Part shown: piece by piece, positions 1 through 54,113 of the stretch
Numbering within the stretch: position 1 is the first letter of the stretch
Layout: each line of letters begins with the position of its first letter
Assembly: GCA_002104905.1 (NCBI GenBank)
Contig: MCFE01000604.1
Coordinates: 1-54,113, forward strand
Direction of reading: 5' to 3'
Origin: Basidiobolus meristosporus CBS 931.73
Lineage: Eukaryota > Fungi > Basidiobolomycota
Length of the DNA stretch: 54,113 nucleotides
The notes under the pieces: generated by a model
Told to the model about the DNA's origin: nothing
What the model saw: the letters and a program-made list of their open reading frames with translations, nothing else
Databases searched by the model: none
Made by a program: the position numbers and the translations under genes

Positions 1-1861
1 CTATTTTTAAGGTATACAGCAATGGCAACTGATTCCACCCAAAATTATAGGATAACTTTTGATCATGGATCATAAATCTTGCCATATCAATTATTGATCT
101 GTTAGCACGTTCTGTTACTCCATTTTGCTGTGGGGAGTATGGTACAGTGGTCTCTTGCTTTATTCCACGATTTTTTGCAGAAGTGAATGAAGAGTTTTGA
201 GGTATATTCTCCACCATTGTCAGAGCATATTTCTTGATTTTTTCACCAGTTTCTCTCTCCACCATGGCTTTAAACTCCCTGAACTTAGACAGAGCTTCTT
301 CCTTTCTCTCCATGAAGTAGACCCATGTGTATCTTGTATAATCATCAATAAAAGTGATTAAATTCTTCATCCTGCCTAAGGATAAATTTTGCATAGGTCC
401 ACACAGATCTGAGTGAGTTAGATCTAATTTTTTATTGGTTTTGACTCACCCAGAGCTCTTGAACAGTTGTCTGGCTTGTTTCCCATATATACAGGCTTCA
501 CAGTGCTCCAAATTAGCCGGGATCAATTTTCACTCCAGAAATTAGCTGATCTTAAATCATTTTACGCAAATAAGCAAAATTGATGTGTCCAAATCTCCTG
601 TGCCGAAGCATTGGTGTTTCTTCATTTAAGTTAGTTATACTGGCTTCCAGATATGATGCAACTTAAGTCAAATTGTATAGAATCTGATCTCTGATGCCTG
701 AAGCAATATGAGCACCATTTGATCAGTGATCCTGCATCCAGAGTTGTCAAAACTGGAACTGAGTCCTTCTGCTGTGGCCTTGCTTACAGAGAGTAGGTTC
801 TTGGCTATTTCTGGTACATAGCATACTTCTTTGAAGGTCAGTGTATGGCTTCCTGCACTGCTTCTAAGGTTTACCTGGATAGTTCCTTCTCCCACTGCAT
901 CAAGTGTTCTATTGTCACCCATGAAAACCTTCTCAATTGGAATTTCTTGATATTGGGTAAAAAGTTCTTTTTGGTGTGCAAAGTGTTGAGATGCTCCAGA
1001 GTCAATATACCACATCTGAGAATCCTTGTTTGTGGTCATATTTAGTGCAGATATGAATAGTCTATCTTCAGTTGTTGCAGCATTTCCATATTCAGGCTTC
1101 TTTTGCTGATTATATTTCTTTTTGAGACACAAGTCTGATATGTGTCCTTTCCTTTTGCAGTAGTTACAAAACAGGTTGCTGTTACCTTTGTAGGGTCTTG
1201 GGTACCTCCTTTATTGGTTATCATTGCTTATTAAAGCATTCTCTTCTTCCTTCTTATTAGCGCTTGATTTTCTTAATTCTTCATCCAGGAGCCTTTCATA
1301 TACAAAAATTAAAGTCAAATCTTCAGCTCTGGACTCTAGGGCTAATACAAGGCCCTGAAACATGTCTGTCAGGCTATTCAGGATGGTAACTATCACATCC
1401 TCATCAGTAGTTGGTACACCCACAGATTCCATCTCTTCTACCAGCAGGGTAATTCTGTTAATTAGATTTTTCATTTCTTCTCCTGGCAGCATCATTGTAG
1501 TAAAGAATTTTTGTCTCAGATACATTTTCTTAGCAGCTGAACATGACTGGTAGGTGTCTTCTAATGCCTTCCAGGCATTCTTTGCCATTTTTGCTCTTGA
1601 CCATTGAATTAGCAATTTGTCTTTAACATTACGGCAAATGCAGTTAAAGGCACTTTGTTCTTTCTTCTGGTACTTTAAGGCTTCCTCTCCCACGTCTTTA
1701 GGAGGACATTCTTCTCCCATGATTATATCCCAAAGGCCTCTTTCTTGTAGCAGCATCTTCATCTTCACCTTCCACACTTGGTAGTTAGATCCATCCAACT
1801 TTTCAGCAGAGGGAAAAATTCCAATAATAGCAGTAGTAGACATTGCAGAGAGTGACAGCTT

Positions 1862-1874
1862 GGGGCTCATAACC
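1862..1874 (-). promoter_or_regulatory. Primer-binding site GGTTATGAGCCCC (copia/Ty5 half-tRNA-iMet type)
   Basis: Abuts the LTR with no spacer; the same motif recurs at 13934-13946, 18075-18087 and 45675-45686, and degenerate at ~30105-30117 and ~40375-40387. Confidence 0.85.
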
Positions 1875-2223
1875 TGTTGTAGGAGTCTTGGAGATATTGG
1901 AAGTAATTGGGAGGACAAGTAGATTACATGGTTTTTGCTTAATGATTTATTGAATGTAAAAGTAGTATTTATACTTTTCCTTGGTCTTAGCATTACAAAC
2001 ACATAGAATAGGTTAAGGAAGGTCCCAAGAACATGTGTGCAAAGTTTGGGGTAGTTTGGACAACTTTGAGAATTTTCATGTTCTGGGTACCTGGTATTTT
2101 GGTGGAAATATTCTAAGTAAATCCCAACAAGGAATTTGGTCAGTATTCACTAGGATTTGAAGGTGATGATGTATGTGACTAAGTTACGTGAATATTTAAG
2201 TGGAAATACTAATTTTTACAACA
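1875..2223 (-). repeat. 5' LTR of copia A1 (349 bp, TGTTG...CAACA)
   Basis: Matches the LTRs at 4542-4891, 41351-41699 and 45687-46035; directly followed on the minus strand by GGTTATGAGCCCC. Confidence 0.95.
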
Positions 2224-4891
2224 GAATATACCTCAAAACTCTTCATCCACTTCTGCAAAATTCATAGGATAAAGCAAGAAACTACTGTACCATAATCCCC
2301 ACAGCAAAATGGAGTAGCAGAATGTGCTAACAGATCAAAAATTGATATGGCAAGATATATGATCCATGATCAAAAATTATCCTATGATTTTTGGGTGGAA
2401 TCAGTTGCCACAGCTGTATACCTTAAGAATAGGAGTTACAATAGAATACTTTGTAATTCTACTCCATTTGAAGCATGGTATGGATACAGACCAAGTGCAG
2501 AACATCTAAGAATAGTTGGGTGTACAGCATATGCCAAAAAAACCGGCTGGAAATCAGTCAAAATTTGAGCCAAAAAGTGTCAAATGCATATTTTTGGGCT
2601 ATTGCAATGAGAGTAAGGCATACAGACTCTACAATACCAAAGCAAAGAAGCTGATCAAGTCCAGGGATGTGTTGTCTGATGAAAATTTAAAATTTTCCCC
2701 AAAAATGACATCGGATTATGACAAAAATCTGATCCCAAGTCCACCAATTGTCAGGATTGAATCAGAGCAAAACAATGAGAATTTTTTCACTCCAGAGGAC
2801 TCTACAACTGCAGTTCAGCCAGAATCAGTGCCCAGGAATATCTCAGAAGTGATCATTCCAGTATCAAATGCCTGGAGATCCAATTGGACAAGAAATAGCC
2901 CAAATTACTATATCAATGAGGGTACAAACTTAGCCTATGCCTATTCAGTCCATATTGATGAACCCCAGACTGTAAAAGAGGCCCTAAAGAGCCCTCAGAC
3001 AAAGTTTTGGAGATCTGCAATGACTGAGGAATATCAGGCCCTGATGGAATATCCAACTTGGGACTTAATCAAATTACCAATTAACCAAAAATCAATTGGA
3101 TGCAGATGGGTCTTCAAGACAAAATACAAGGCTGATGGTACAGTTGAAAGATACAAAGCAAGACTTGTAGCCAAAGGATACTCTCAAACACAAGGACTTG
3201 ACTATACTGAGACCTTTGCACTGGTAGCCAAGTTTAATTCCATCAGATTAATATTGGCTATTGCAGCCAAATATAAGTTTGTTATTCATCAAATGGATGT
3301 AAAAACTGCATTTTTGAATGGAGAACTTGATGAGTATGTGTATATGGACCAGCCTGATGGGTTTGTTGTCCAAGATAACCTCCATTTGGTCTGCAAGCTT
3401 AAAAAGTCACTACATGGTCTCAAACAATGACCAAGAGCCTAGAGTTGCAAGATAGATTCTTATTTGGAATCTTTGAGTTTCAAAAGGAGTAATGCTGGCT
3501 ATAGTATGTATTATAAGCCAGATAGAGCAAATCCAGTTCTACTAGCTCTATATGTGGATGATCTTATTATAGCCACCAATAACCTAGAAACATTGGAAGA
3601 GACTAAATCCAGCCTATCAAAGGAGTTCAAGATGTTTGATCTAGGAGAACATAGTTACTACTTAGGGATTAAGCTCTCCATAGACAGAAGTACCCAGACT
3701 ATCACCCTAAGCCAATCCAAGTATATTCAAGATATACTAAAGAAGTACCAAATGGAAGACTGTAAATTGGCAGCTACCCCAATGGACACAAACCTTAACT
3801 TGATCAAAACTCAACCAAATCAAGAGAGCTTGGTACCATCTGAAAGCCCTGACTTTCCTTATCAATCTATGGTCAGCAGTCTGATGTATATCATGCTTGG
3901 AACACGTCCAGGTATCTCATATTCAGTGGGAGTTGTCAGCCAACATTATCAGAACTATAGATCTGATCATATTGCAGCAGTTAAGCGGATTTTTAGATAC
4001 CTAAAAGGAACTGCTAATATCTGCGTAAGATACACTCATAAGAACTCAGAACAGGATCTTGTGGGATACTCTGATGCTGATTGGGGACAAAATCTAGAAG
4101 ACAGAAGATCCACCACAGGATGCACCTTTCTTTACTGTAAAGGAGCATTTCATGGAATTCAAGAAAGCAACCAACCGTAGCACTCTCTACCACAGAGGCA
4201 GAAAATATGGCATCCTGTGAAGCTACAAAAGAAGCAATGTGGTTAAGAAAACTTTTTACAGATTTAGGCCTATGTCAAAAAACACCTATTGCTTTATTTC
4301 AAGATAATCAAAGATGTATACAATTAGGTAGAAATCCAACTTTTCATGCTGGAACCAAGCACATAGATATTAGACATCATTTCATACGTGAAGCTATAGA
4401 GAATAACTTAGCTAGCTTATTTTACTGTCCTACAGATGAAATGATTGCAGACATATTTACCAAACCATTAGCCAGAGACAAGTTTGAATGTCTTAGGTCA
4501 AAATTAGGACTAGTTAGTATGAACATTTAGCTGAGTGGGAATGTTGTAAAAATTTGTATTTCCACCTAAATATTCACCTAACTTAGTCACTTACATCATC
4601 ACCTTCAAGTTCTGGAGAATACTGACCAAAATTCCTTGTTGGGATTTACTTAGAATATTTTTGCCAAAATACCAGGTACCCAGAACATGAAAATTCTCAA
4701 AGTTGTCCAAACAGCCCCAATCTTTGCACACATGTTCTTGGGATCTTCCTTAACCTATTTCATGTGTTTGTTATGCCAAGACCAGGGAAAAGTATAAATA
4801 CTACTTTCACATTCAATAAATCATTAAGTGAAAGCCACATAATCACTTGTTCTCCCAAATCACTTCCAATATTTCCAAGACTCTTACAACA
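2224..4891 (+). mobile_element. Ty1/copia family A copy A0, 3' half (integrase C-term, RT, RNase H, PPT, 3' LTR)
   Basis: ORFs 2347-2568, 2516-3430 (YKARLVAKGY, QMDVKTAFLNG), 3464-4180 (LYVDD, GYSDADWG), 4207-4530 (TKHIDIRHHF, ADIFTK); PPT GCTGAGTGGGAA at 4530-4541; LTR 4542-4891. Begins mid-integrase (GG/EYTSKLF) exactly where the A1 LTR ends. Confidence 0.95.
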
Positions 4892-5170
4892 GTTCTGACT
4901 TTGAAGGCTTTAGTACATTGTCATCTCAAAGGATGCTGAATCCAGCACATACTTTTGTTAAGACGCCAACTAAGTTGGGGATTGTAGCTTAATAGTTTTC
5001 CCTTGACAAGCTTGTGGCTTTATTCCCCTTCACATTAGATTAGAGACAGAACCCAAGCATTCCTAGCAAGCTTTTGCCAGAGGTTATTGCACCCAGTGAA
5101 CACCCCACACTCAAAACACTTGCAAAGTGTGGACATATCTCTCTCTTGGACTTATACACCACCACATATT

Positions 5171-5188
5171 TGGCACCTAATGTGGGGG
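5171..5188 (+). promoter_or_regulatory. Gypsy PBS, tRNA-Lys(CUU)-like, partly deaminated
   Basis: TGGCACCTAATGTGGGGG, 4 nt after the LTR end, resembles the Lys1,2 PBS TGGCGCCCAACGTGGGGC; three of four differences are C>T/G>A. Confidence 0.6.
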
Positions 5189-5306
5189 GTTCATACAAGC
5201 TCCCTAAGACCCAACAAGACTTACCTGAAGATTTGAGCTGTTATCCACTTATTGAAACAAGACTACCAATATTATCAAGATTACAACACCAACCTACCTG
5301 CCCAAA

Positions 5307-7042
5307 ATGAATTCTATGCCATTACCACTCTCACATGGAGCCCCACAGTTTGATGGAAAGAACGTGGAAAGCTTTATATTCAAGTGGGAGAAGCTCTGCA
5401 AGATGTGCAGCCTATCTGAACAAGAAATGGCTGAAGACTTCCCCTACTACTGCAGCAATGATATTACCACTAAGCTTCTCAGACAAGGAGACATTCTTAC
5501 TGACTGGGCCTTAATGAAGACATACCTACAGACCAAGTATGGTAGACCCCAGATATACTATGGAATTGAAGACCTTGGACACTTTGGTAGGACTGGACTT
5601 TCCAAGCTACCACTTGAAGAGTTCATTCAACAGTATGAAGATATGGCCAAGCCACTCCTAGAGTCCCAGACTATAACTGAGTTTACCATGACACTTTACC
5701 TTGCACAAGGGCTTCCTCAGGACTTGGCAAGGAAAGTTGAATTACATGCAGACAAGGATGACAAGTCTGGCATCCCTTGCCTTGCAGATATGAAACGTGT
5801 TCTCCTAGAGGTAAAGCAAACTTCCACCTTTATCAGACTCCTGACATCTAATCTGCCAGACCAGTCAACCAAGGAGTCAAGGAGTGCTGTTGCTGACAAT
5901 CAGACCTACACTACCAACAGAATTGACCAACTTGCTGAACAGCTACAAAAGCTAGCCCTCAAGATTAATGGCTCAGCTGAGGTTGCTACTGAGGGTCAAA
6001 GACCTTTGCCCAGACACTGCATCTGGTGTGACTCTACTCAACATGCCAGACAAGAATGCTCAGAGCTTAGTCAGCTACTCAGAGAAGGAGCAGTACAGTT
6101 TGATGCTGATGGAATGCTTGCTGACAAGGAAGGAAGAAGGATTCCCACTAATTTCCAAAGAGGAGGGATGAGAGCCCTTTTTCAGAAGTCTGACTCAGCA
6201 ACCAGAAAGATTACTGCTGATGCCCCTACTGGGACTCATACAGTGAATCCAAACAACCCTGACAGCAAACAATACAAAGTTGATGCCTTTGTTACCAAAA
6301 GACACCTCCCTGAAGAACCTGCCAAACCCATCCTTAGAAGACCATGATTTGAAGAACCTGAAGCTGTTATTGACAAGAGGCCTAGTATGCTGCCCACCCA
6401 AGATCCATTGCCTCACCTTTGATGACCTCAAAGATAGCAAGCTACTCAAGCCCTCAACTGATTACTGAGAAGCTGCTGAAGCAGAACCTCACTTTGTTGG
6501 TTGGAGAAATCATTAGTGTATCCCCATCTGTTAGGAAGACCTTTGATGAGCAGCTTAGAACAAGACAACAAGCTGTTGAACATATGGATACCCATATAAT
6601 TCAGACAAACCATGAAGACCACCAAAAGGATGACAACACTACTGAATATAAGACCTTTTACTCTATTGGAACTGCTGTGGTAAAAGGGTATATATATGAT
6701 GACCCTGTTGACTGCCATATTGACAGTGGCTCAGAGATTTGTGTTATGCTGCTAGATTTCTGGAAGACACTTAGAAGCAAGGAGCTACTGCCTGTTGATA
6801 CAGATATTGGATGGAACATGACTGATGCAAACTCAGGATCTACTCCACTCTATGGTGTAGTACACAAGTTTCCTATTGAGGTACAAGGAATCAAGGTCTG
6901 GCTTCCCCTCTTCATCTGCCAGAAGGCAAACTTTGACCTTCTGCTAGGTAGACCATGGGAAACCAGTACCAAGGCTACAACTACCAACTATTTCAATGGG
7001 TCAGTATGGTACACCATACAAGGATCCAACCCAGAACTATAG
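5307..7042 (+). pseudogene. Gypsy gag + aspartic protease (disrupted)
   Basis: APQFDGKNVESF gag start, zinc knuckle CIWCDSTQHARQEC, protease motif IDSGSEIC in ORF 6419-7042; stop at 6345 and a frameshift. Confidence 0.85.
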
Positions 7043-7392
7043 TCAACCTTCTGTGGTGTAACACCCAACAATAAGAGGATGCATACTGCTTGCCAGACAA
7101 CACATCCTGTTATAGAAGAAGATGAGGAGCCTGACAATATACACCCCAACATTTGGAGCTGCTCATTAGGTATACAGGAGCAGACAACTATGGTTTAAAC
7201 AAAATACAAGACAATAGAACAGAAGATTAGACCATCACTTGCCCCTTTATTGATGGATCTTGACCTGCTGATTACATTAGACCACCAGAAGAAACACCAG
7301 AAGATATACAACTTACACCTGAGAGACTTAAGTAACTTATCATTGGTGATGGAAACCTAACACCAGAGGAGATACTATTACTTAAAGAGACC

Positions 7393-10097
7393 TTGAAAAG
7401 GCATGATAAGGGCTTCTCATATAATGTCAAGGAGATGGGACTCTTAAAGACATTGGCTGAAAAACCTATTAAGATTCATACAGTGCCCCACACACCCTGG
7501 TCATTTAAGCCTTACCCACTGCCCAGAGGACTCCAAGCTGATGTGCATGACCTACTTAAGAAGAAGATAGAAGCTGGTATCCTAGAACCTTGCCATGGAC
7601 CTTATGCTAACAGATGGTTTGTGACCAAAAAGAAGAATGGAAAGCTCCAATTCATTCAAGACATGCAACCTGCAAATGCTATCACTATCAGAGATGCTGC
7701 TATACCTCCATCTATTGATGACTTTGCAGAAAGCTTTAGTGGCCACTCCATCTACTCAACATACAATCTCTACTCAGGATATGACCAGATCCCCCTTGAT
7801 GAGACATCAAGAGATATGTTTGCACTCCAGACACCATTTGGATGGTTAAGGATGATAAGACTCAGCCAAGGGGCTACCAACTCCGTGGTTCAGTTCCAGA
7901 GATGCATGGTGAATGTGCTGTATCAGCTAATACCTGAGAAACTTGCTGTTGTTGTTGATGACATAGGCATCAAAGGACCAAAAATCCGGGACACTACTGA
8001 AGTTATGTCTGGAGTAAAAAAGTTTGTCTATGATCATATTTCAGACAATGATGCCATATTAGGAGCCATTGAAGAAGCTGGACTCACCATCAGTGGTGAG
8101 AAAAGCAGCTTTGGTGTATCAGAGATATCCATTGCTGGACAAAAATGCAACACCTTTGGTTGTTCACCTGAAGACTCCAAGACACAAAAGATATGCAACT
8201 GGCCTACCCCCACAAATCTCACACAAGCTTGTGGCAGCTTGTGGGTTCTTTAGGATCTGGATCCCAAGATTTTCTGAGATAGCAGAACCAACTTACCAAC
8301 TACAGAGAAAGAATACCCCATTTATCTGGGGAGAAGAGCAAGAAGAAGCCATGCAATTACCAAAAGAGGCCTTAGTATCTCCACCAGGTCTAAGACCTCT
8401 TGACTATCAGAACACTGAATGCCTACCTATTTTGACAGTGGATGCAAGCCCTATAGTAGCTGGAGCACTACTTGGCCAAGATGATGAAGATGGCAACTGC
8501 TATGCCTGCAGATATGAGAGCTGCCTATTCTCTCCTAGAGAACAAAGATACTCACAAATTAAGAGAGACCTACTAGGAGTTGTGAGGATGCTGAGGAAAC
8601 TGAAGTCACAACTCTACATGACACATTTCATCCTGGAAACAGATGCCAAGCCACTTATAGGAATGGTCAACAAGCCTGACCTACCTGATGATGCCACAAA
8701 CCAATGGATGGCATGGCTGAAAATGCTTGACTTTGAGGTCAGACATATCCCTGGCAAGACAAATGTTGTAGCTGATGCACTCTCCAGGAAGGGACCACAA
8801 TTATTTGAAGACTTGGACGCTCACTTTGATGATATTATTGATGCAGAGATCTGACAGATTGCCATCTAAGACCAAGAGAGAACTACCTGGAGTCTGATCA
8901 AGGATTATCTAAGGACACTTAAGAAACCTAGCTGGATGGAAACTCAGGAAGAAGGCACACCACTACTATCTCAAAGATGATCTTCTCTTTAAGCAAGTGA
9001 AGCCTGGACTTATGCCAAGAAGAGTAGTCACTACCCCACAAGAGCAACTGAACATCATGACAAGTATCCACCAAGGAGAACCAGGAGGACATAGAGGACA
9101 AGAAGCTACCTACAATGCCACAGCTCAGAGGTACTACTGGGATAACATGTATCCCAATATCCAACACTTTGTTGAGTTATGTGTAGCCTGCCAGAAGAGA
9201 TCCTCCAAGCGTTATGAAGAACCACTGCATCCTACCTACACAATCTGTCTATGGCAAAAGGTTGGTATTAACCTTGTCCACATGCCAACAGCTGGATCAA
9301 AAAAGTACCTGATTGTTGCAAGAGATGACCTTAGTGGATGGGCAGTGGCTTGAGCCTTGCCCAACAACAAGAGTCATACCATATGGAGATTTATACTTGA
9401 AGACATCATATGCATATTTGGCTGCATCCAACAGTTTGTTGCTGACAGAGGGGAGATGACATCCCAAATGATCCAGGAGTTGTGCTCAAAGTACAAGATA
9501 CACATTGCTTTTACAACAGCTTACCACCCTCAAGCCAATGGAATGACAGAGAGAGGACATGGACCATTGGTGAACTCTCTTGTCAAGACCTGTAAGAATA
9601 ACACAACACTGTGGCCACAGCAATTATATCTTGCACTCTGGGCAGATAGAATTACTACCAAGAGAACAACTGGATTATTGCCATTCAAACTACTCTATGG
9701 ACATGACTGCATACTACCAGTTGAGTTAAACACAGTCACTTGGTACTCATTGAATTGGAGATCCAATATGCAGACTGAAGACCTCCTTGCAACTTGCATA
9801 CAGCAACTTGATCACCATAACTTGAATATCAGCAGAGCTGCTGAACAACTTAAGGATACACAACTGAAGAACAAGGTGCCCATTGACAAATCACACCCAA
9901 CAAGACCAAAACCACTATCACTAGGAGACCCAGTATTACTCTATGATTCCACCTTGGACAAACAATGGAGTTGGAAGTTGGACAACAAATGGACTGGCCC
10001 CTACCTCATTTCCAAAGTGATTGGAAATGGAAGTTATTACATATCTGAGCTTGACAACACCCAGTTGAGAGCACCAGTTGCTGGAAACCAACTTTAG
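7393..10097 (+). pseudogene. Gypsy pol RT-RNase H-integrase (disrupted)
   Basis: RT YDQIPL / LSQGATNS / VVVDDIGIKG; RNase H LTVDAS, LETDAKPL, NVVADALSR; integrase H-H-C-C (IHQ..GHRG..CVAC), VADRG, YHPQANGMTER; premature TGA stops. Confidence 0.92.
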
Positions 10098-11241: not shown

Positions 11242-13270
11242 GTGCCAATGAGAGGGAAAGAGAAAATGCTTTAACCAGCAATGATAACCAACAAAGGAGG
11301 TACCCAAGACCAAACAAAGGCAACAGCAACCTGTTTTGCAACTACTGCAAAAGGAAAGAACACACATCAGACAGGTGTCACAAAAAGAGAGATTATCAGC
11401 AAAAGAAGCCTGAGTATTGAAATGCTGCAACAACTGAAGATAGACTATTCATATCTGCACTAAATATGACCACAAACAAGGATTCTCAGATGTGGTATAT
11501 TGACTCTGGAGCATCTCAACACTTTACACACCAAAAAGAACATTTTAACAATATCAAGAAATTCCAGATAATAAGGTTTTCATGGATGATAATAGAACAC
11601 TTGATGCAGTGAGAGAAGGAACTATCCACGTAAACCTTAGAAGCAGTGAAGAAAGCCACACACTGACCTTTAAAGAAGTACTCTTTATACCAGAAATAGC
11701 CCAAATTACTATATCAATGAGGGTACAAGCTTAGCCCATGCCTATTTGGTCCATATTGGTGAGTCCCAGACTGTAAAAGAGGCCCTAAATAGCCCTCAGA
11801 CAAAGTTTGGAGATCTGCAATGGCTGAAGAATATCAGGCTCTGATGGAAAATCAAACTTGGGACTTTGTCAAAATACCATCAACTAAAAATCAGTTGGAT
11901 GCAGATGGGTCTTTAAGTCAAAGTATAAAGGTGATGGTCCAATGGAAAGATACAAAGCAAGACTTGTGGCCAAAGAATACTCTCAAACAAAAGGACTTGA
12001 CTATACTGAGACCTTTGCACCAGTTGCCAAGTTTATTTCCATCAGATTGATATTGGGTATTTGCAGCCAAAATAAATTTTTTATACATCAAATGGATGTA
12101 AAAACTGCATTTGCAAATGGAGAACTTGATGAGGACATGTATATGGACCAGCCTGATGCATTTTTTGGCCACAATAACCCCCATTTGGTCTGCAAGCTTA
12201 AAAAATCTCTTTACGGTCTCAAGCAATCACCAAGAGCCTGGAATTGCAAGATAGATTTGCATTTTTGGAATCTTTGAGTTTCAAGAGGGGTAATGCTGTC
12301 TATAGTTTATAATATAAGCCAGATAGAGCAAGTGCAGTTCTATTAGCTCTAAATGTGGATGGTTTTATTACAGCCACCAATAATGTAGCAACATTGGAGG
12401 AGACTAAATCCAGCCTATCTAAAGAGCTCAAGATGTCCAACCAAGGAGAACTCAGTTTATACTTGGGGATTAAGTTCTCCATAGACAGAAGTACCCTGAC
12501 TTTCACCCTAAGCCAATCCAAGTATATTCAAGATATACTAAAGAAGTACCAAATGGAAGACTGTAAACTGGCAGCTACCCTAATGGAGCCAAACCTTAAC
12601 TTAGTCAAACTCAATGAATTCAAGAGAGCTTGGTGCCATCTGAAAGCCCTGACTTTCCTTATCAATCTATGGTTGGTGGTCTGATGTATATCATGCTTGG
12701 AATATGTCCAGATATCTCATATTCAGTGGGAGTTGTCAACCAGCATTATCAGAACTATGGATCTGATCATATTGTAGCAGTTGAGTGGATATTTAGATAC
12801 CTAAAAGGAGCTGCTGAGATCTGCTTAAGATACACTTATAAGTACTCAGAACAGAACTTTGTGGGATACTCTGATGCTGATTAGGGACAAAACATGGAAG
12901 ACAGAAGATCTACCACAGGATACACCTTACTTTACTGTAAAGGAGCAATCTCATAGAAATCACAAAAGCAACAACCATAACCCTTTCCACCACAGAGGCA
13001 GAGTATATGGTTGCCTGTGAAGCTACAAAAAAAAACAATGTGGTTAAGAAAGCTTTGTGCAGATTTAGGCCTATGTCAAAAAACACCTATTATTTTATTT
13101 CAAGATAATCAAGGATGTATACAATTAGGTTGAAATTCAACTTTTGATGCTGGAACCAAGTACATAGATATTAGACATCACTTCATACATGAAGCTATAG
13201 AGAATAACTTAGTTTGCTTAGTATTCTGTCCTTCAGATGAAATGATTGCTGACATATTCACCAAACCATA
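11242..13270 (+). mobile_element. Degenerate copia A copy A5 (gag C-term/PR, internal deletion, RT, RNase H); target of the gypsy insertion
   Basis: Resumes in gag (ANERERENALTSNDNQQRR, CNYCKRKEH) right after the gypsy LTR; RT fragments in ORFs 11942-12277, 12355-12684 and 12630-12884. Confidence 0.9.
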
Positions 13271-49279: not shown

Positions 49280-49607
49280 GCCAAAAGCTCGAATTCTTAT
49301 GTTCTGCATAGCCTAATTTGCATCTATTTTCCAGCTGGCCCAGCTTGGCTAAAGCATCCAATATTGACTGAGGTGCTCTTCCAGGATTCACTAAGGGTAT
49401 CTAATTATAACGGACTATTAAACCGCAAATTCTGTCAATACTACAAGCTGTCTACGCCTTTCAAGGTCCCGATATTGATAAATAATTGGGCATCAATGAT
49501 TAAATATATACGTATCCCCACATGGTTTTCAATTTGAGTGAAACTGGTTGTAGAGATAAAAGAATCATTGCCATGACCTTTATTCAGTATTGCATGCATT
49601 TTCACAT

Positions 49608-49871
49608 TTACCAATTATCCTCGTCATGGTGGCCCGATTCATCGCCAGGACCATCCTCATCCTGGTCGTCTCCGTAGTCACAGAATGGACCAGTGGCATC
49701 CTTTTCCCGGCAAACTGTCTGCTCTCCGCACATAGTCTCCACCCATTCATCGTTGACGCAGCGGATAATAGCTCGGTCATCCTCTGTGGAGCATTTACTT
49801 TCAAGGTTGTTGCAAGCCAGAACAATCTGACTCAAAAGAGCAAGCACAAGAATGGTTGCGTGGAACTTCAT
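49608..49871 (-). CDS. Small secreted CBM19-like protein S1 (87 aa), acidic tail
   Basis: Signal peptide MKFHATILVLALLSQIVLA; C-x6-C-x10-C-x4-W-x4-C-x5-C-x9-C; D/E-rich tail. Confidence 0.88.
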   Translation of the reverse strand: MKFHATILVLALLSQIVLACNNLESKCSTEDDRAIIRCVNDEWVETMCGEQTVCREKDATGPFCDYGDDQDEDGPGDESGHHDEDNW

Positions 49872-50224
49872 TAGATTATTGCCAGTGATGAAGAGTGCGG
49901 GATCTATTTATGTACAGCTTTGGAATCTGAGGTCCTTTCAATTCAGGAGCAGTCGCGTGCTAATACTGCACAGCTTGCGTTGCCTTTGCAGAGGAAACCC
50001 CTTGGTCCCCCGTACTAAATAGTCAAATCGTTCTGGATAATTCAATACCCTGGGACCTCATGGATGAAAACTATTTAAGCAAAAAGCCTAATATAGAGTA
50101 ATCTGCTAGAGACTTGTGGAAGTATAGGGCGAGGTTGGCTTATAAAAGTGGGGCATCTTCTATCGATGACACTCAACAAGTGCCAATTCCTCCACAGTAT
50201 CGTCTCCGTTGAAAGATTACACCA
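49872..50224. promoter_or_regulatory. Divergent promoter region between S1 and S2
   Basis: 353 bp between head-to-head ATGs; TATAAAA at 50141 (plus) and CATAAATA at 49905-49912 (minus). Confidence 0.55.
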
Positions 50225-50500
50225 ATGAAACTCTACGCCACGCTGATATTCTTCGCTATTTTGAGTCAGGTTGCGCATGCCTGTCAAAGTATGGAAAGTA
50301 AGTGCTCCACTGAGGATGATCGTACAATCGTTCGCTGCGTCAATGATGAATGGGTCGAAACCAAATGTGGAGAGGGAACAGTCTGCCAAGAAAAGCGTCA
50401 TACTGGGCCGTTCTGCGATTATGAAGGACATGATGACTGGGAGGAGGATAATGATGGAGAAGATCATGGTGATGGTGATGATGAAGAGAGCGAAGATTAA
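50225..50500 (+). CDS. Small secreted CBM19-like protein S2 (91 aa), acidic tail
   Basis: Same architecture as S1; TATAAAA at 50141-50147. Confidence 0.88.
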   Translation: MKLYATLIFFAILSQVAHACQSMESKCSTEDDRTIVRCVNDEWVETKCGEGTVCQEKRHTGPFCDYEGHDDWEEDNDGEDHGDGDDEESED

Positions 50501-51271
50501 AAAGATGCAAGACGTTCGAGTTGTATTTGGCTTACAATAAACAGAAGATATTCTCTTGAACAATGTTTCTTTTCGCCAGATTTAAAGGATCTTGTGCCGA
50601 AAATATCCATCTTTTGTCATCTAAATTGTGACTACTGTGACAGGTAATATCCCGAGTACTTGGATATTTGAAGATTGTATGTTACCACACGAGTGGTACT
50701 GAAGATTGTATGTTACCATGCGAGTGGAGGTGCTTTCATCTTGGCCCACCTCCATCTCCTAATCACCCTGCCATCATGCAATACTGAGCTTTGTACATAA
50801 ACCTGCAAGTTCAGCTTCAAAGGTGATAGTAGATAGGATTACTGCACATATTGCACTTCTGCACGGAAATGCTCCATTACTCTACCCGTCGCAGTTTCTG
50901 CTACTCCACAATTCTGCAGCTGCACATTTACAATTATAGAAATTAAGTTGGTAACTCGTTATCACACCATTTGCCGTCATTCCAAGCTTTTGCAGTGGTG
51001 TCTTACTCCTTAATACCTAAATTTATCTCTCCATTTCACTCCAGTGCTAGGGGGTCTGTGATACTTCTCCGGATGGATGTAGGGGATTTGCAATGGTAAG
51101 GACTTTTAGAAGCGTATTGGTCATTGATACGCAGTTATGGGGAAAGGAGCACTATATTTAGAAACTATTAGTAACCACATAGAGATACCATTTACTACTA
51201 TAAATACCTTGAAAGCTACTTCCCAAATGACACACTCACAGCCTATCCTCTACTTCAACTACGATCATACC

Positions 51272-51541
51272 ATGAGAATCTGCACTGCATTTGTTGTTCT
51301 TGCCTTTCTGAGCCAGGTAGTGATGGGATGCACCCAAAACGAAAGCAAATGTTCCTCAGAGGATGCCCAGACTATCGTCCGATGCGTCAACGATGGCTGG
51401 GTTGATACGAAGTGCGGACAAGGAACAGTCTGTCGTCAAGGTGACCACACTGGGCCATTTTGTGATCACGAGGATGTGGAAGACGATCAAGAGTGGGGCC
51501 AAGATGATGATGAGGAGGAGGAGGAGGAGGACAATGAATGA
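51272..51541 (+). CDS. Small secreted CBM19-like protein S3 (89 aa), poly-acidic tail
   Basis: Start reassigned to the ATG at 51272 (MRICTAFVVLAFLSQVVMG) by paralogy; TATAAATA at 51199-51206 lies inside the longer ORF-track frame. Confidence 0.88.
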   Translation: MRICTAFVVLAFLSQVVMGCTQNESKCSSEDAQTIVRCVNDGWVDTKCGQGTVCRQGDHTGPFCDHEDVEDDQEWGQDDDEEEEEEDNE

Positions 51542-51696
51542 TACATCGTATAGTAATAATAATATTATATGTCTACCACTATCCAAATATCCTCTAAATA
51601 ATAAAGCTCATCAGTAAGTACAATCAATGCTATGAATCTGTGATAATATCATACTATTGGCCATTCTCCTGATACTTCTCGTTGTCACATTAACTA

Positions 51697-51769
51697 TCAG
51701 TCCTTGTCATTGTCCCCATCACCGCTTGATCAGAAGGTCTAGAGCAATTGGTGCAGCATAGACTCTCAT
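51697..51769 (-). pseudogene. Internally deleted paralog of S4/S5
   Basis: ATG AGA GTC TAT GCT GCA CCA ATT GCT CTA.. (MRVYAAPIAL) joined to GDNDKD*; upstream GATTTATATTCACCA and downstream GATACTTCTC match the S4 flanks; Cys domain absent. Confidence 0.75.
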
Positions 51770-52188
51770 GATTCGATTGTTTTATTCGAGGTATTAAAAG
51801 CGTTCAACGGCACCCTCGCCTAACCCTTTGCTGATTTATATTCACCAAGTAAAAGCTAAGTTATAGCGCCAATGAAATTTACTCTATTCAGATGAACAAC
51901 CATAATCCCATCTACTTTCTAGTGAACTATCGTAGCTTGCAAGTAACTACAAAAAGCTGTGACCATCAAGTATAAATCGTATTGGCATTTGTCCAGATTC
52001 GAAAACGTGATCTAATATGGCTATCAAGAATAGCACAAGACAGACAAAGGCAAGGTATTGAGACGACAGCTCTTGTGAAATATTACTTTATTATTTAGTA
52101 CAGCTAGTGTCGGCAGATCTATAAGCTAAAGCAGAGTTCTTGATACTTCTCTGCAACAATACTAATTTCATATACAGCACAGTCCGGA

Positions 52189-52485
52189 CTAGTGACCATG
52201 GTGGCGGTCATCCCAGTGCTCGTCGTGGTCTCCATCCCAGTGACCGTCATGGTCCCCATCCCAATGATCATCGTGATCCCAGCCATCATGGTCACAGAAT
52301 GGTCCGGTGTGATCCTCCTCACGACAGACTGTCTCCTTGCCACACTTCGTCTCCACCCAGTCGTCGTTGACACAGCGGATAATGGTGCGGGCATCCTCGG
52401 ACGAGCACCGGCTTTCATTGTGGGTGCATCCAATCACCACCTGGCTGAGAAAGGCCAAAGCAATCAGTGCAACGTAGACTCTCAT
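52189..52485 (-). CDS. Small secreted CBM19-like protein S4 (98 aa), His/Asp/Trp repeat tail
   Basis: Start at ATG 52485 (MRVYVAL) by identity with S5; tail HDGWDHDDHWDGDHDGHWDGDHDEHWDDRHHGH; TATAAAT at 52557-52563 (minus). Confidence 0.9.
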   Translation of the reverse strand: MRVYVALIALAFLSQVVIGCTHNESRCSSEDARTIIRCVNDDWVETKCGKETVCREEDHTGPFCDHDGWDHDDHWDGDHDGHWDGDHDEHWDDRHHGH

Positions 52486-53174
52486 GATTTGGCTGTTGTA
52501 TTCGAAATATGGAAAGTAAGGCACTGATGGGTATCATTCAACGGCATCCTTGACTGATTTATATTCACCAGCTCACGCGATATGGGCTTCCGTTAAATTG
52601 TAGTGCCAATAGAACTCACTGAATACAAATGAATCGCATCGATCATCCTTACCCTGCTTTGATAGCCTAGACTCCTTAATTTTGCCAACTGACTGCTACT
52701 GCACACGCACTCGCCAATTTCCCCCGCCTGATGGATGTCTTGGAGAGACTCGAGTGGATAAAAGAGACCCTATGTCATTCGGCCTTGACGCATATTCCAG
52801 AAGCATACTGCATTTAGGTGATGTTGTGAAGACTGGTGTCATGTGACATAAAAAGTGGCTATCCGACTCGGGATTTCCTGGATAGCATCAGTCTACATTC
52901 CATTGAAGTTTATTTGATAAATGCCATACCTTCAGCTAAATATTATTGTGAAATATGCTTAGCACTTGGTATAACAACACGGCGTCATCAAGTATGTATC
53001 ACAACCACAATCCTCATGATTCAAACATGCGATTAGATGTTACAGGACAGACGAAGGTAAGGTGAATAAAGACAACAAATGATGTAGGAAGTGATTTATT
53101 GTTAAGTGCAATCAGCGACAGCAGGTCTTTAAACCAGTACAAAGCTCTTTATATCGTTCACAAAGTAATCCTGA

Positions 53175-53495
53175 CTAGTGATCACGGTGGCGGTCATCCC
53201 AGTGCTCGTCGCGGTCTCCATCCCAGTGACCGTCGTGATCCCCATCCCAGTGACCGTCATGATCCCCATCCCAATGATCATCGTGATCCCAGCCATCATG
53301 GTCGCAGAATGGCCCGGTGTGATCCTCCTCACGGCAGACTGTCTCCTTGCCACACTTCGTCTCCACCCAGTCATCATTGACACAGCGGATAATGGTGCGG
53401 TCATCCTCGGACGAGCACCGGCTTTCATTGTGAGTGCATCCAATCACCACCTGGCTGAGAAACGCCAAAGCAATCAGTGCAACGTAGACTCTCAT
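53175..53495 (-). CDS. Small secreted CBM19-like protein S5 (106 aa), His/Asp/Trp repeat tail
   Basis: Near-identical to S4 with one extra 24-bp/8-aa repeat; TATAAAT at 53567-53573 (minus). Confidence 0.9.
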   Translation of the reverse strand: MRVYVALIALAFLSQVVIGCTHNESRCSSEDDRTIIRCVNDDWVETKCGKETVCREEDHTGPFCDHDGWDHDDHWDGDHDGHWDGDHDGHWDGDRDEHWDDRHRDH

Positions 53496-54113
53496 GGTTT
53501 GGCTGTTGTATTTGAAGTATGGAGAGTAAGATACTGATGGGTATCATTCAACGGTATCCTTGACTGATTTATATTCACCAGCTCACGCGATATGGGCTTC
53601 CGTTAAAATGTAGTGCCAATAGAACTCACTGAATACAAATGAATCGCATCGATCATCCTTACCCTGCTTTAGTAGCCTAAACCCTGTAATTTTACTGACT
53701 AGCAGCTGCTACTACTACATACAAACACACAAATCCCCCGCATGGTGAATATCTTTGAGTGGCTCGAACAGATGAAGGAGACCTCATGTGGATCGACAAC
53801 AGTGCGTATACCAACCCCATACAGTATTTAAGTGATCTGGTGAAGGATGGTGTCAAGTGGCATCAAGTTATCTTGCATACCCCCCATTATACATTCTCTT
53901 GAACTATCTGCTGATTTTCAATGTCGTGAATGCCATTTTAGCAGTTACTACAAAAAGCTGTGGTGATCAAGCACGTACTGTAGCGGCAATTTCGAATTTC
54001 GAATATATGATCCTATATTGTTGTCGAGAATAGCTCAAACCAGGCAACGACAAATTACTGAGATAAGAACTATTATACGATATTATTTTATTATTAGGCA
54101 TTATCTGTGTCAT

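Follow-up and report, generated by a model that had tools for sequence, protein, structure and literature searches.

A 54,113-nt stretch of the genome of Basidiobolus meristosporus CBS 931.73 (GenBank assembly GCA_002104905.1, contig MCFE01000604.1; hereafter the window) contains, close to its right end, an array of small intronless genes for proteins composed of a signal-like leader, a six-cysteine core and an acidic tail. We conclude that these are real genes and that their core is, very probably, a divergent member of the CBM14/CBM19 superfamily of carbohydrate-binding modules (CBMs), although it stays outside strict Pfam membership; its nearest relatives are the repeats of a Basidiobolus protein with four CBM19 modules. 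Basidiobolus has amplified a minimal CBM19-type module joined to an unusual Asp/His/Trp tail.

Selection on the core and its homology to CBM19

Are such short frames genes? The list of open reading frames (ORFs) and an alignment agree on five intact, intronless paralogs of 87-106 amino acids on both strands of positions 49608-53495 (copies 1-5, Table 1), as an earlier note made from the sequence of this DNA had described, and the core pattern claimed there matches in all five. The core spans 46-48 amino acids and contains six cysteines; 32 alignment columns are invariant among the five copies, covering the six Cys, N-D-x-W-V, C-G, T-V-C and T-G-P-F-C-D. Together with 23 copies from three public loci, the five window copies make a collection of 28, of which 26 are full-length, and the ratio of nonsynonymous to synonymous divergence (dN/dS) was estimated on this collection by the Nei-Gojobori method. 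Over all pairs, core dN/dS is 0.08 at a synonymous divergence (dS) of about 1.2, with a leader dN/dS of 0.26. In comparisons of B. meristosporus with B. ranarum, the core value is 0.06 at a synonymous divergence of about 2.1, and the leader value again 0.26; among the five window copies the core stands at 0.13, dS at about 1.2 and the leader at 0.28. The six cysteines, the leader and the open frame are kept in every full-length copy (26/26). Because core dN/dS is 0.06-0.13 at dS above 1, and hidden Markov model (HMM) E-values between copies are about 1e-32, the core is under strong purifying selection and the genes are real rather than chance ORFs. Among overlapping frames, both constraint and homology support the sense frame. 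The idea that the family is fast-evolving holds for the tails only, which change by gain and loss of repeats, whereas the core is strongly conserved.

Each copy begins with a 19-residue leader that has Lys or Arg at position 2, a hydrophobic stretch, Val/Ala and Ala/Gly at -3/-1 and Cys at +1. This signal-like sequence, already noted earlier and present in all five window copies, leads us to infer secretion, with cleavage just before the first cysteine. All five window genes are preceded by a TATA-like box, at a distance of 41-84 nt, and followed by a poly(A)-like hexamer; alignment of the upstream regions of 11 copies revealed no common motif beyond the TATA-like box.

What is the core related to? 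Pfam gathering scores are 20.1 bits for CBM_19 (PF03427) and 22.1 bits for CBM_14 (PF01607, the peritrophin-A family), two families that we take to belong to the same Pfam clan. In Pfam scans of 15 members, CBM_19, the family named in the earlier note, recurs in four, but always below threshold (14.5, 13.7, 12.3 and 11.0 bits). CBM_14 gives no match in any of the 15 at E-values up to 1-10, and no rival Pfam family recurs among them. An exhaustive HMMER search of 1.84 billion representative sequences with the core profile returned the family itself, three giant proteins and P0006 (E 8e-12), a 251-aa four-repeat Basidiobolus protein that passes Pfam for both CBM_19 (42 bits) and CBM_14 (29 bits). 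The only close relative of P0006 is P0012 (B. meristosporus K493DRAFT_373193), a secreted protein that scores 46 bits against CBM_19 and likewise exceeds the CBM_14 threshold. When the family core was aligned by hhalign with the eight repeats of P0006 and P0012, the probability was 96.2% and the E-value 2.4e-9 over 45 columns, within a range of 95-96% and 2e-8 to 2e-9. All six cysteines, N-x-x-W-V, C-G-x-x-T-x-C and (F/Y)-C-D fall into register, the alignment being interrupted only where the second loop of the family has three extra residues.

The giant proteins (P0005, P0007 and P0008; 2113-7596 amino acids) were discounted: their matches cover only 13-28 positions of the profile and fall within repeats of cadherin-like or mucin type, and we treat them as compositional or partial matches, not relatives. 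A sequence search of the PDB with the core profile found nothing, and the leads that an Atlas feature search produced, for copy 2, were weak (0.81).

An AlphaFold2 model of the core, built on an 8-sequence alignment, is a five-strand beta structure with a predicted local distance difference test (pLDDT) score of 90. Structure prediction followed by Foldseek had been proposed in the earlier note, and chitin-binding CBM14 structures do rank first: Der p 23, the peritrophin-type domains of Aplysia EHEP, Avr4 with a chitin hexamer, and human CHIT1 (chitotriosidase). Template-modelling (TM) scores against the CBM14 proteins are about 0.7, with probabilities of 0.95-0.99 and E-values of 0.3-1. A VIA search of 48,161 chains, independent of Foldseek, placed Der p 23 (Z 5.8), EHEP (5.5) and Avr4 (5.3) on top, with root-mean-square deviations (rmsd) of 1.7-1.8. 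A second Avr4 structure (4.8) and Blo t 12 (4.5) come next, these five matches covering 43-47 of the 48 residues, and tachycitin and the CBM14 module of CHIT1 are also among the matches. The Atlas structure matches comprise a Zoopagomycota cluster with GH18 and CBM_19, and the CBM_14 proteins obstructor and chitotriosidase. As modeled, the core resembles solved CBM14 modules in three dimensions. By the bridging Basidiobolus four-repeat protein and the fold, homology to CBM19 is established, and we regard the link as well supported although it lies below the Pfam threshold. The CBM19 resemblance first noticed from the sequence is real by this route, while the direct Pfam match stays sub-threshold.

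P0012 has features of its own. It is represented by two gene calls of equal length in B. meristosporus, 5.9 kb apart (Table 1), which are the same sequence, as judged from an overlapping locus (L006). The sequence E-R-R-A-P precedes three of its four CBM19 repeats. Because these dibasic sites resemble Kex2 cleavage sites, P0012 might be cut into single CBM19 mini-modules.

The acidic tail and the proposed function

The tail begins immediately after the last Cys-Asp and measures 22-41 amino acids in the window and up to 71 in relatives. Asp and Glu make up 39-71% of it and His up to about 31%, Lys and Arg are almost absent, and Trp recurs about every eight residues. The charged, divergent tails of the earlier description are thus divergent in length as well, and more exactly strongly acidic. 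Two styles occur in the window: copies 1-3 end in a short Asp/Glu tail with one or two His, and copies 4 and 5 end in HWDGDHDG-type octapeptides encoded by a 24-nt repeat, whose 3.0 and 4.0 units, respectively, make the sister copies differ. The tail of copy 5 is predicted to be disordered (pLDDT below 50 at residues 69-106). The mature proteins have isoelectric points (pI) of 4.05-4.7 and net charges of -16 to -20 at pH 7; the computed charge of the His-rich copies is close to zero at pH 5 and has become positive at pH 3. DxDxDG is a calcium-loop motif pattern, and the DGDHDG units conform to it.

What might such a protein do? We lean towards a composite function, in which a secreted CBM19-type module docks on chitin while the tail binds cations, cloaks the surface with charge in a pH-dependent manner, or both. 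The signal peptide would be cleaved just before the first Cys, and the mature module would then dock on chitin, supplied either by the wall of the fungus itself or by insects, whose chitin is plentiful where the fungus lives, in herptile guts and dung. The invariant Asn-Asp-x-Trp hairpin would form the contact together with the Phe that precedes the final Cys. Once docked, the module would display the tail, whose net charge at neutral pH lies between about -10 and -17, and the tail could bind cations through His/Asp pairs (Zn, Cu or Ni) and through Asp runs including DGDHDG (Ca). It could also give the surface a negatively charged coating, and in the His-rich copies acid pH would reverse the sign of the charge. 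Taken separately, chitin is a reasonably probable ligand of the module, and metal binding as the main job of the tail is a tentative proposal that we would sooner doubt than accept. The role of wall-coating or chitin-masking effectors, put forward in the earlier note, may likewise apply.

Several results count against the composite function. None of the 15 members scanned reaches the gathering score of Pfam CBM_19 or CBM_14, and the family profile did not reach the canonical CBM19 domains of GH18 chitinases in the exhaustive search. The structural scores are weak (E 0.3-1, Z below 6) because the domain has only 48 residues, and alone they are not decisive. Nor is a CBM14 fold a guarantee of chitin binding, because PfAvr4-2, a CBM14-fold paralog of Avr4, binds de-esterified pectin and not chitin (PMC8104879). 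The core itself is acidic (pI 4.3-4.8). For the tail, metal binding is proposed from composition, and no relatives are detectable in the PDB or Atlas. Finally, an exact-sequence look-up among public gene calls did not find copies 2 and 5.

Has the ligand changed, then? The module may have drifted to chitosan or to another polymer of the wall or host, with the acidic core and tail binding a polycation or cationic surface mainly by charge. Strong acidity extends over the entire mature protein, including the core, the family has diverged enough to fall below the Pfam thresholds, and the switch of a CBM14-fold Avr4 paralog to pectin is a case in point (PMC8104879). However, the residues shared with genuine CBM19 repeats (Asn, Trp, Phe/Tyr, and Gly/Thr close to the Cys) are invariant in 26 of 26 full-length copies, which argues for a retained sugar-stacking surface and leaves a changed ligand unlikely, if worth keeping in mind. 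A loss of function altogether, in which the copies would be decaying duplicates beside transposons with no current role, might be suggested by the adjoining retroelement block, by the one decayed copy present and by the absence of most copies from public annotation. It is contradicted by strong purifying selection on the core at saturated synonymous divergence, within and between two species, and by the persistence of all six cysteines, leader and open frame in all 26 full-length copies; we give it hardly any credence.

Competitors or the host might instead be the target. The proteins could be antimicrobial or antifungal chitin-binding peptides in the style of tachycitin or of PAFC and bubble protein, or polyanionic decoys for the cationic peptides of amphibians and reptiles. 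The structural matches include tachycitin at Z 3.8 and PAFC at Z 3.4, the latter with 30% identity over 43 residues, P0006 has a weak match to Pfam 'Bubble' (14.4 bits), gene amplification is typical of interaction proteins, and the net charge of -16 to -20 points the same way. The known antimicrobial members of such folds are cationic, however, whereas this family is extremely anionic; moreover, CBM14 chitin binders outscore PAFC structurally, and no toxin-like or pore-forming feature was found. We therefore consider such a role improbable. Wall-bound proteins that organize calcium or mineral, like animal biomineral matrix proteins with their chitin-binding domain and Asp-rich region, are a distant prospect. 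By analogy, the architecture parallels that of chitin-binding acidic matrix proteins as they are generally known, and the tails carry Asp/Glu runs and DGDHDG units that fit the calcium-loop pattern. Their high His and Trp content, in turn, suggests transition metals or pH switching over CaCO3, matrix proteins are unrelated to the family in sequence, and we know of no mineralization in Basidiobolus.

Returning to the composite function, one may picture a chitin-anchored, pH-switchable coat in which dozens of near-identical anchors plant Asp/His/Trp octapeptide tails on chitin. At neutral pH these tails would capture Zn, Cu or Ca, or neutralize cationic peptides of the host; in acid compartments of the gut they would let them go again or switch to the opposite charge. 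This picture is speculative, and we think it unlikely to be correct; if true, the coat would be a wall-bound zincophore or decoy system without a described counterpart in other fungi. Should the module bind chitin and the tail bind metals, the proteins would represent a natural and compact design of the 'anchor plus chelator' type. They would offer a handle on metal and pH biology at the fungal surface in the gut and, possibly, a chitin-affinity or metal-capture tag.

Extent, setting and annotation of the array

Table 1. Positions of the family genes and of other features, in the window and in public loci
Feature	Locus	Positions	Strand	Description
Copy 1	window	49608-49871	-	87 aa; 19-aa leader, six-Cys core, 22-aa Asp/Glu-rich tail (2 His, 1 Trp)
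Copy 2	window	50225-50500	+	91 aa; 26-aa Asp/Glu tail; weak Pfam CBM_19 match (14.5 bits)
Copy 3	window	51272-51541	+	89 aa from conserved Met; 24-aa tail including a poly-Glu run; weak CBM_19 match (13.7 bits)
Decayed sixth copy	window	51719-51769	-	leader-like start, stop after 16 codons, without core; between copies 3 and 4
Copy 4	window	52189-52485	-	98 aa; 33-aa His/Asp/Trp tail (52192-52290); 3.0 units of 24-nt repeat (52209-52280)
Copy 5	window	53175-53495	-	106 aa; 41-aa His/Asp/Trp tail (53178-53300); 4.0 units of 24-nt repeat (53195-53290)
Overlapping ORF	window	53178-53537	+	119 aa
Overlapping ORF	window	50075-50563	-	162 aa
Public model of copy 3 (P0004/P0011)	window	51137-51541	+	134 aa
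Ty1/copia-like copies	window	around 0.2-4 kb, 27-30 kb, 39-46 kb		shared segments 65-98% identical
Ty3/gypsy-like pol	window	about 7.4-10 kb
ORF	window	5307-6347		no Pfam match
Annotated gene	L001 (MCFE01000143)	1807-7309	+	479 aa, multi-exon; faint FHA_2 match
PTR2-family peptide transporter	L001	11945-13552	-
PTR2-family peptide transporter	L001	17727-19376	+
Copy without leader	L003 (B. ranarum)	3466-3633
Copy without leader	L003 (B. ranarum)	8849-9208
P0012 gene call	L005 (MCFE01000194)	6001-6777
P0012 gene call	L005 (MCFE01000194)	11899-12675

The lengths quoted are counted from the conserved Met, the listed ORFs of two of the five copies beginning further upstream. Copies 1 and 2 are divergently transcribed from either side of a 353-nt spacer. 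DNA repeat analysis identifies copies 4 and 5, 1010 nt apart, as a recent duplication (95% over 300 nt) and shows the decayed sixth copy to have an upstream promoter-like region and leader start akin to theirs. A tblastn search across the window found no copies beyond these.

The array extends past the end of the window. Window positions 50392-54113 are 99.4% identical to the start of L001, a locus on B. meristosporus scaffold MCFE01000143, and an HMM scan found 10 copies in the first 11 kb of L001, four in the second B. meristosporus locus (L002) and 10 in 11 kb of a B. ranarum contig (L003). The L001 set plus window copies 1 and 2 give at least 12 copies, so that the five genes of the earlier note are real but only part of a larger array. 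A word-based search for relatives gave three matches only, all from Basidiobolus (one B. ranarum and two B. meristosporus). A tree of leader and core separates few groups; one starred split (96/97), which sets window copies 1 and 2 and B. ranarum copies apart from the others, hints at two old lineages in the family. The genes are tandemly amplified, in co-oriented blocks, and in Basidiobolus only. Two B. ranarum copies lack the leader, one of them also ending soon after the core, and may be pseudogenes or assembly errors; a further copy runs off the end of the same contig.

To the left of the array, the 47-kb transposon block reported earlier is borne out: positions 1-47 kb hold nested, decayed Ty1/copia-like elements and one Ty3/gypsy-like element. 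Within positions 1-47000, no ORF of at least 170 amino acids was seen without a retroelement domain, with one exception (5307-6347; Table 1). On its other side, the array is directly followed in both B. meristosporus loci by two genes for PTR2-family peptide transporters, arranged alike in L001 and L002; a functional link between them and the array is not evident.

How are these genes annotated? In the public model of copy 3, translation begins at an ATG further upstream, so that the leader ends up 45 residues into the protein, and secretome predictors would miss the model. It is probably over-extended, because a TATA-like box is found between the annotated start and the conserved Met, 73 nt short of the latter. 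In L001, a 479-aa multi-exon gene is annotated antisense across five unannotated family copies; it is probably an annotation error, assembled from the long ORFs that lie antisense to family genes. Throughout 49580-53537 of the window, one or two long ORFs, antisense or out of frame, overlap each family gene (examples in Table 1); these are by-products of biased codon content, not genes. In sum, public annotation misses or mis-models most of the family genes.

Comparison with known systems

Full-text literature searches found no paper describing the family; a single work in that literature names Basidiobolus and CBM19 together, and its subject is chitinases. A survey of zygomycete secretomes reports that chitin-binding modules are enriched in Zoopagomycota; CBM19 and CBM14 do not figure in its main text. 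Three features are new here: a CBM19-type module that stands by itself, the Asp/His/Trp tail, and amplification in Basidiobolus only. Basidiobolus is a herptile-gut symbiont and an occasional agent of basidiobolomycosis in humans and animals. Stand-alone CBMs, such as Avr4 and the LysM and CBM18 effectors, are central to hiding and protecting the wall in Dikarya, and to our knowledge almost nothing comparable has been described from early-diverging, animal-associated fungi.

The closest known modules are those of CBM19 itself, found in the P0012 repeats and at the C-terminus of fungal GH18 chitinases. They share with the family the order of the six cysteines, the length of four of the five inter-cysteine intervals, and the conserved N-x-x-W-V hairpin, C-G-x-x-T-x-C and (F/Y)-C-D-(Y/H). 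In contrast to them, the family has a single module with no catalytic or repeat partner (the earlier note was correct that the module stands alone, without a catalytic domain), a novel acidic tail and the loop-2 insertion.

In predicted architecture, a putative leader and a single module, the family resembles the chitin-shielding effectors of the Avr4 type. Avr4 of Cladosporium fulvum, a stand-alone secreted CBM14 effector (PDB 6BN0, PMC6128652), is likewise a small protein of essentially one disulfide-rich module, and it matches the core model with Z 5.3 and an rmsd of 1.7 over 47 residues. In CfAvr4, chitin binding involves a Trp backed by an Asn-Asp-Asn motif (PMC6128652); this functionally important Asn/Asp cluster beside the key Trp has a similar counterpart in the N-D-x-W that is invariant in the family. 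Avr4 differs in belonging by sequence to another CBM family and in having four disulfides, extra helices and no acidic tail, and the family has no Pfam CBM_14 match. Avr4 acts in the plant apoplast against plant chitinases, whereas Basidiobolus is not a plant pathogen. The best fold matches come from arthropod CBM14/peritrophin-A proteins (Der p 23, Blo t 12, obstructor and tachycitin), small six-cysteine beta modules that bind chitin matrices and are often joined to low-complexity regions. No sequence relationship to them is detectable beyond the clan level, and what is joined to their modules is mucin-like or rich in Thr and Pro, unlike an Asp/His/Trp tail.

Comparable compositions, and a comparable logic of anchoring and cation binding, occur in the His/Asp-rich metal-binding segments of Zn transporter loops and fungal zincophore tails and in the acidic chitin-binding matrix proteins of biominerals. 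The family tail has no homology to any of these, and we know of none with a regular Trp every eight residues and a near-absence of Lys and Arg. The 'new system' of the earlier note was too strong a claim, since stand-alone secreted CBM proteins are already a known kind, exemplified by Avr4 and the LysM and CBM18 effectors. The family is a lineage-restricted variant of such proteins and not a categorically new system.

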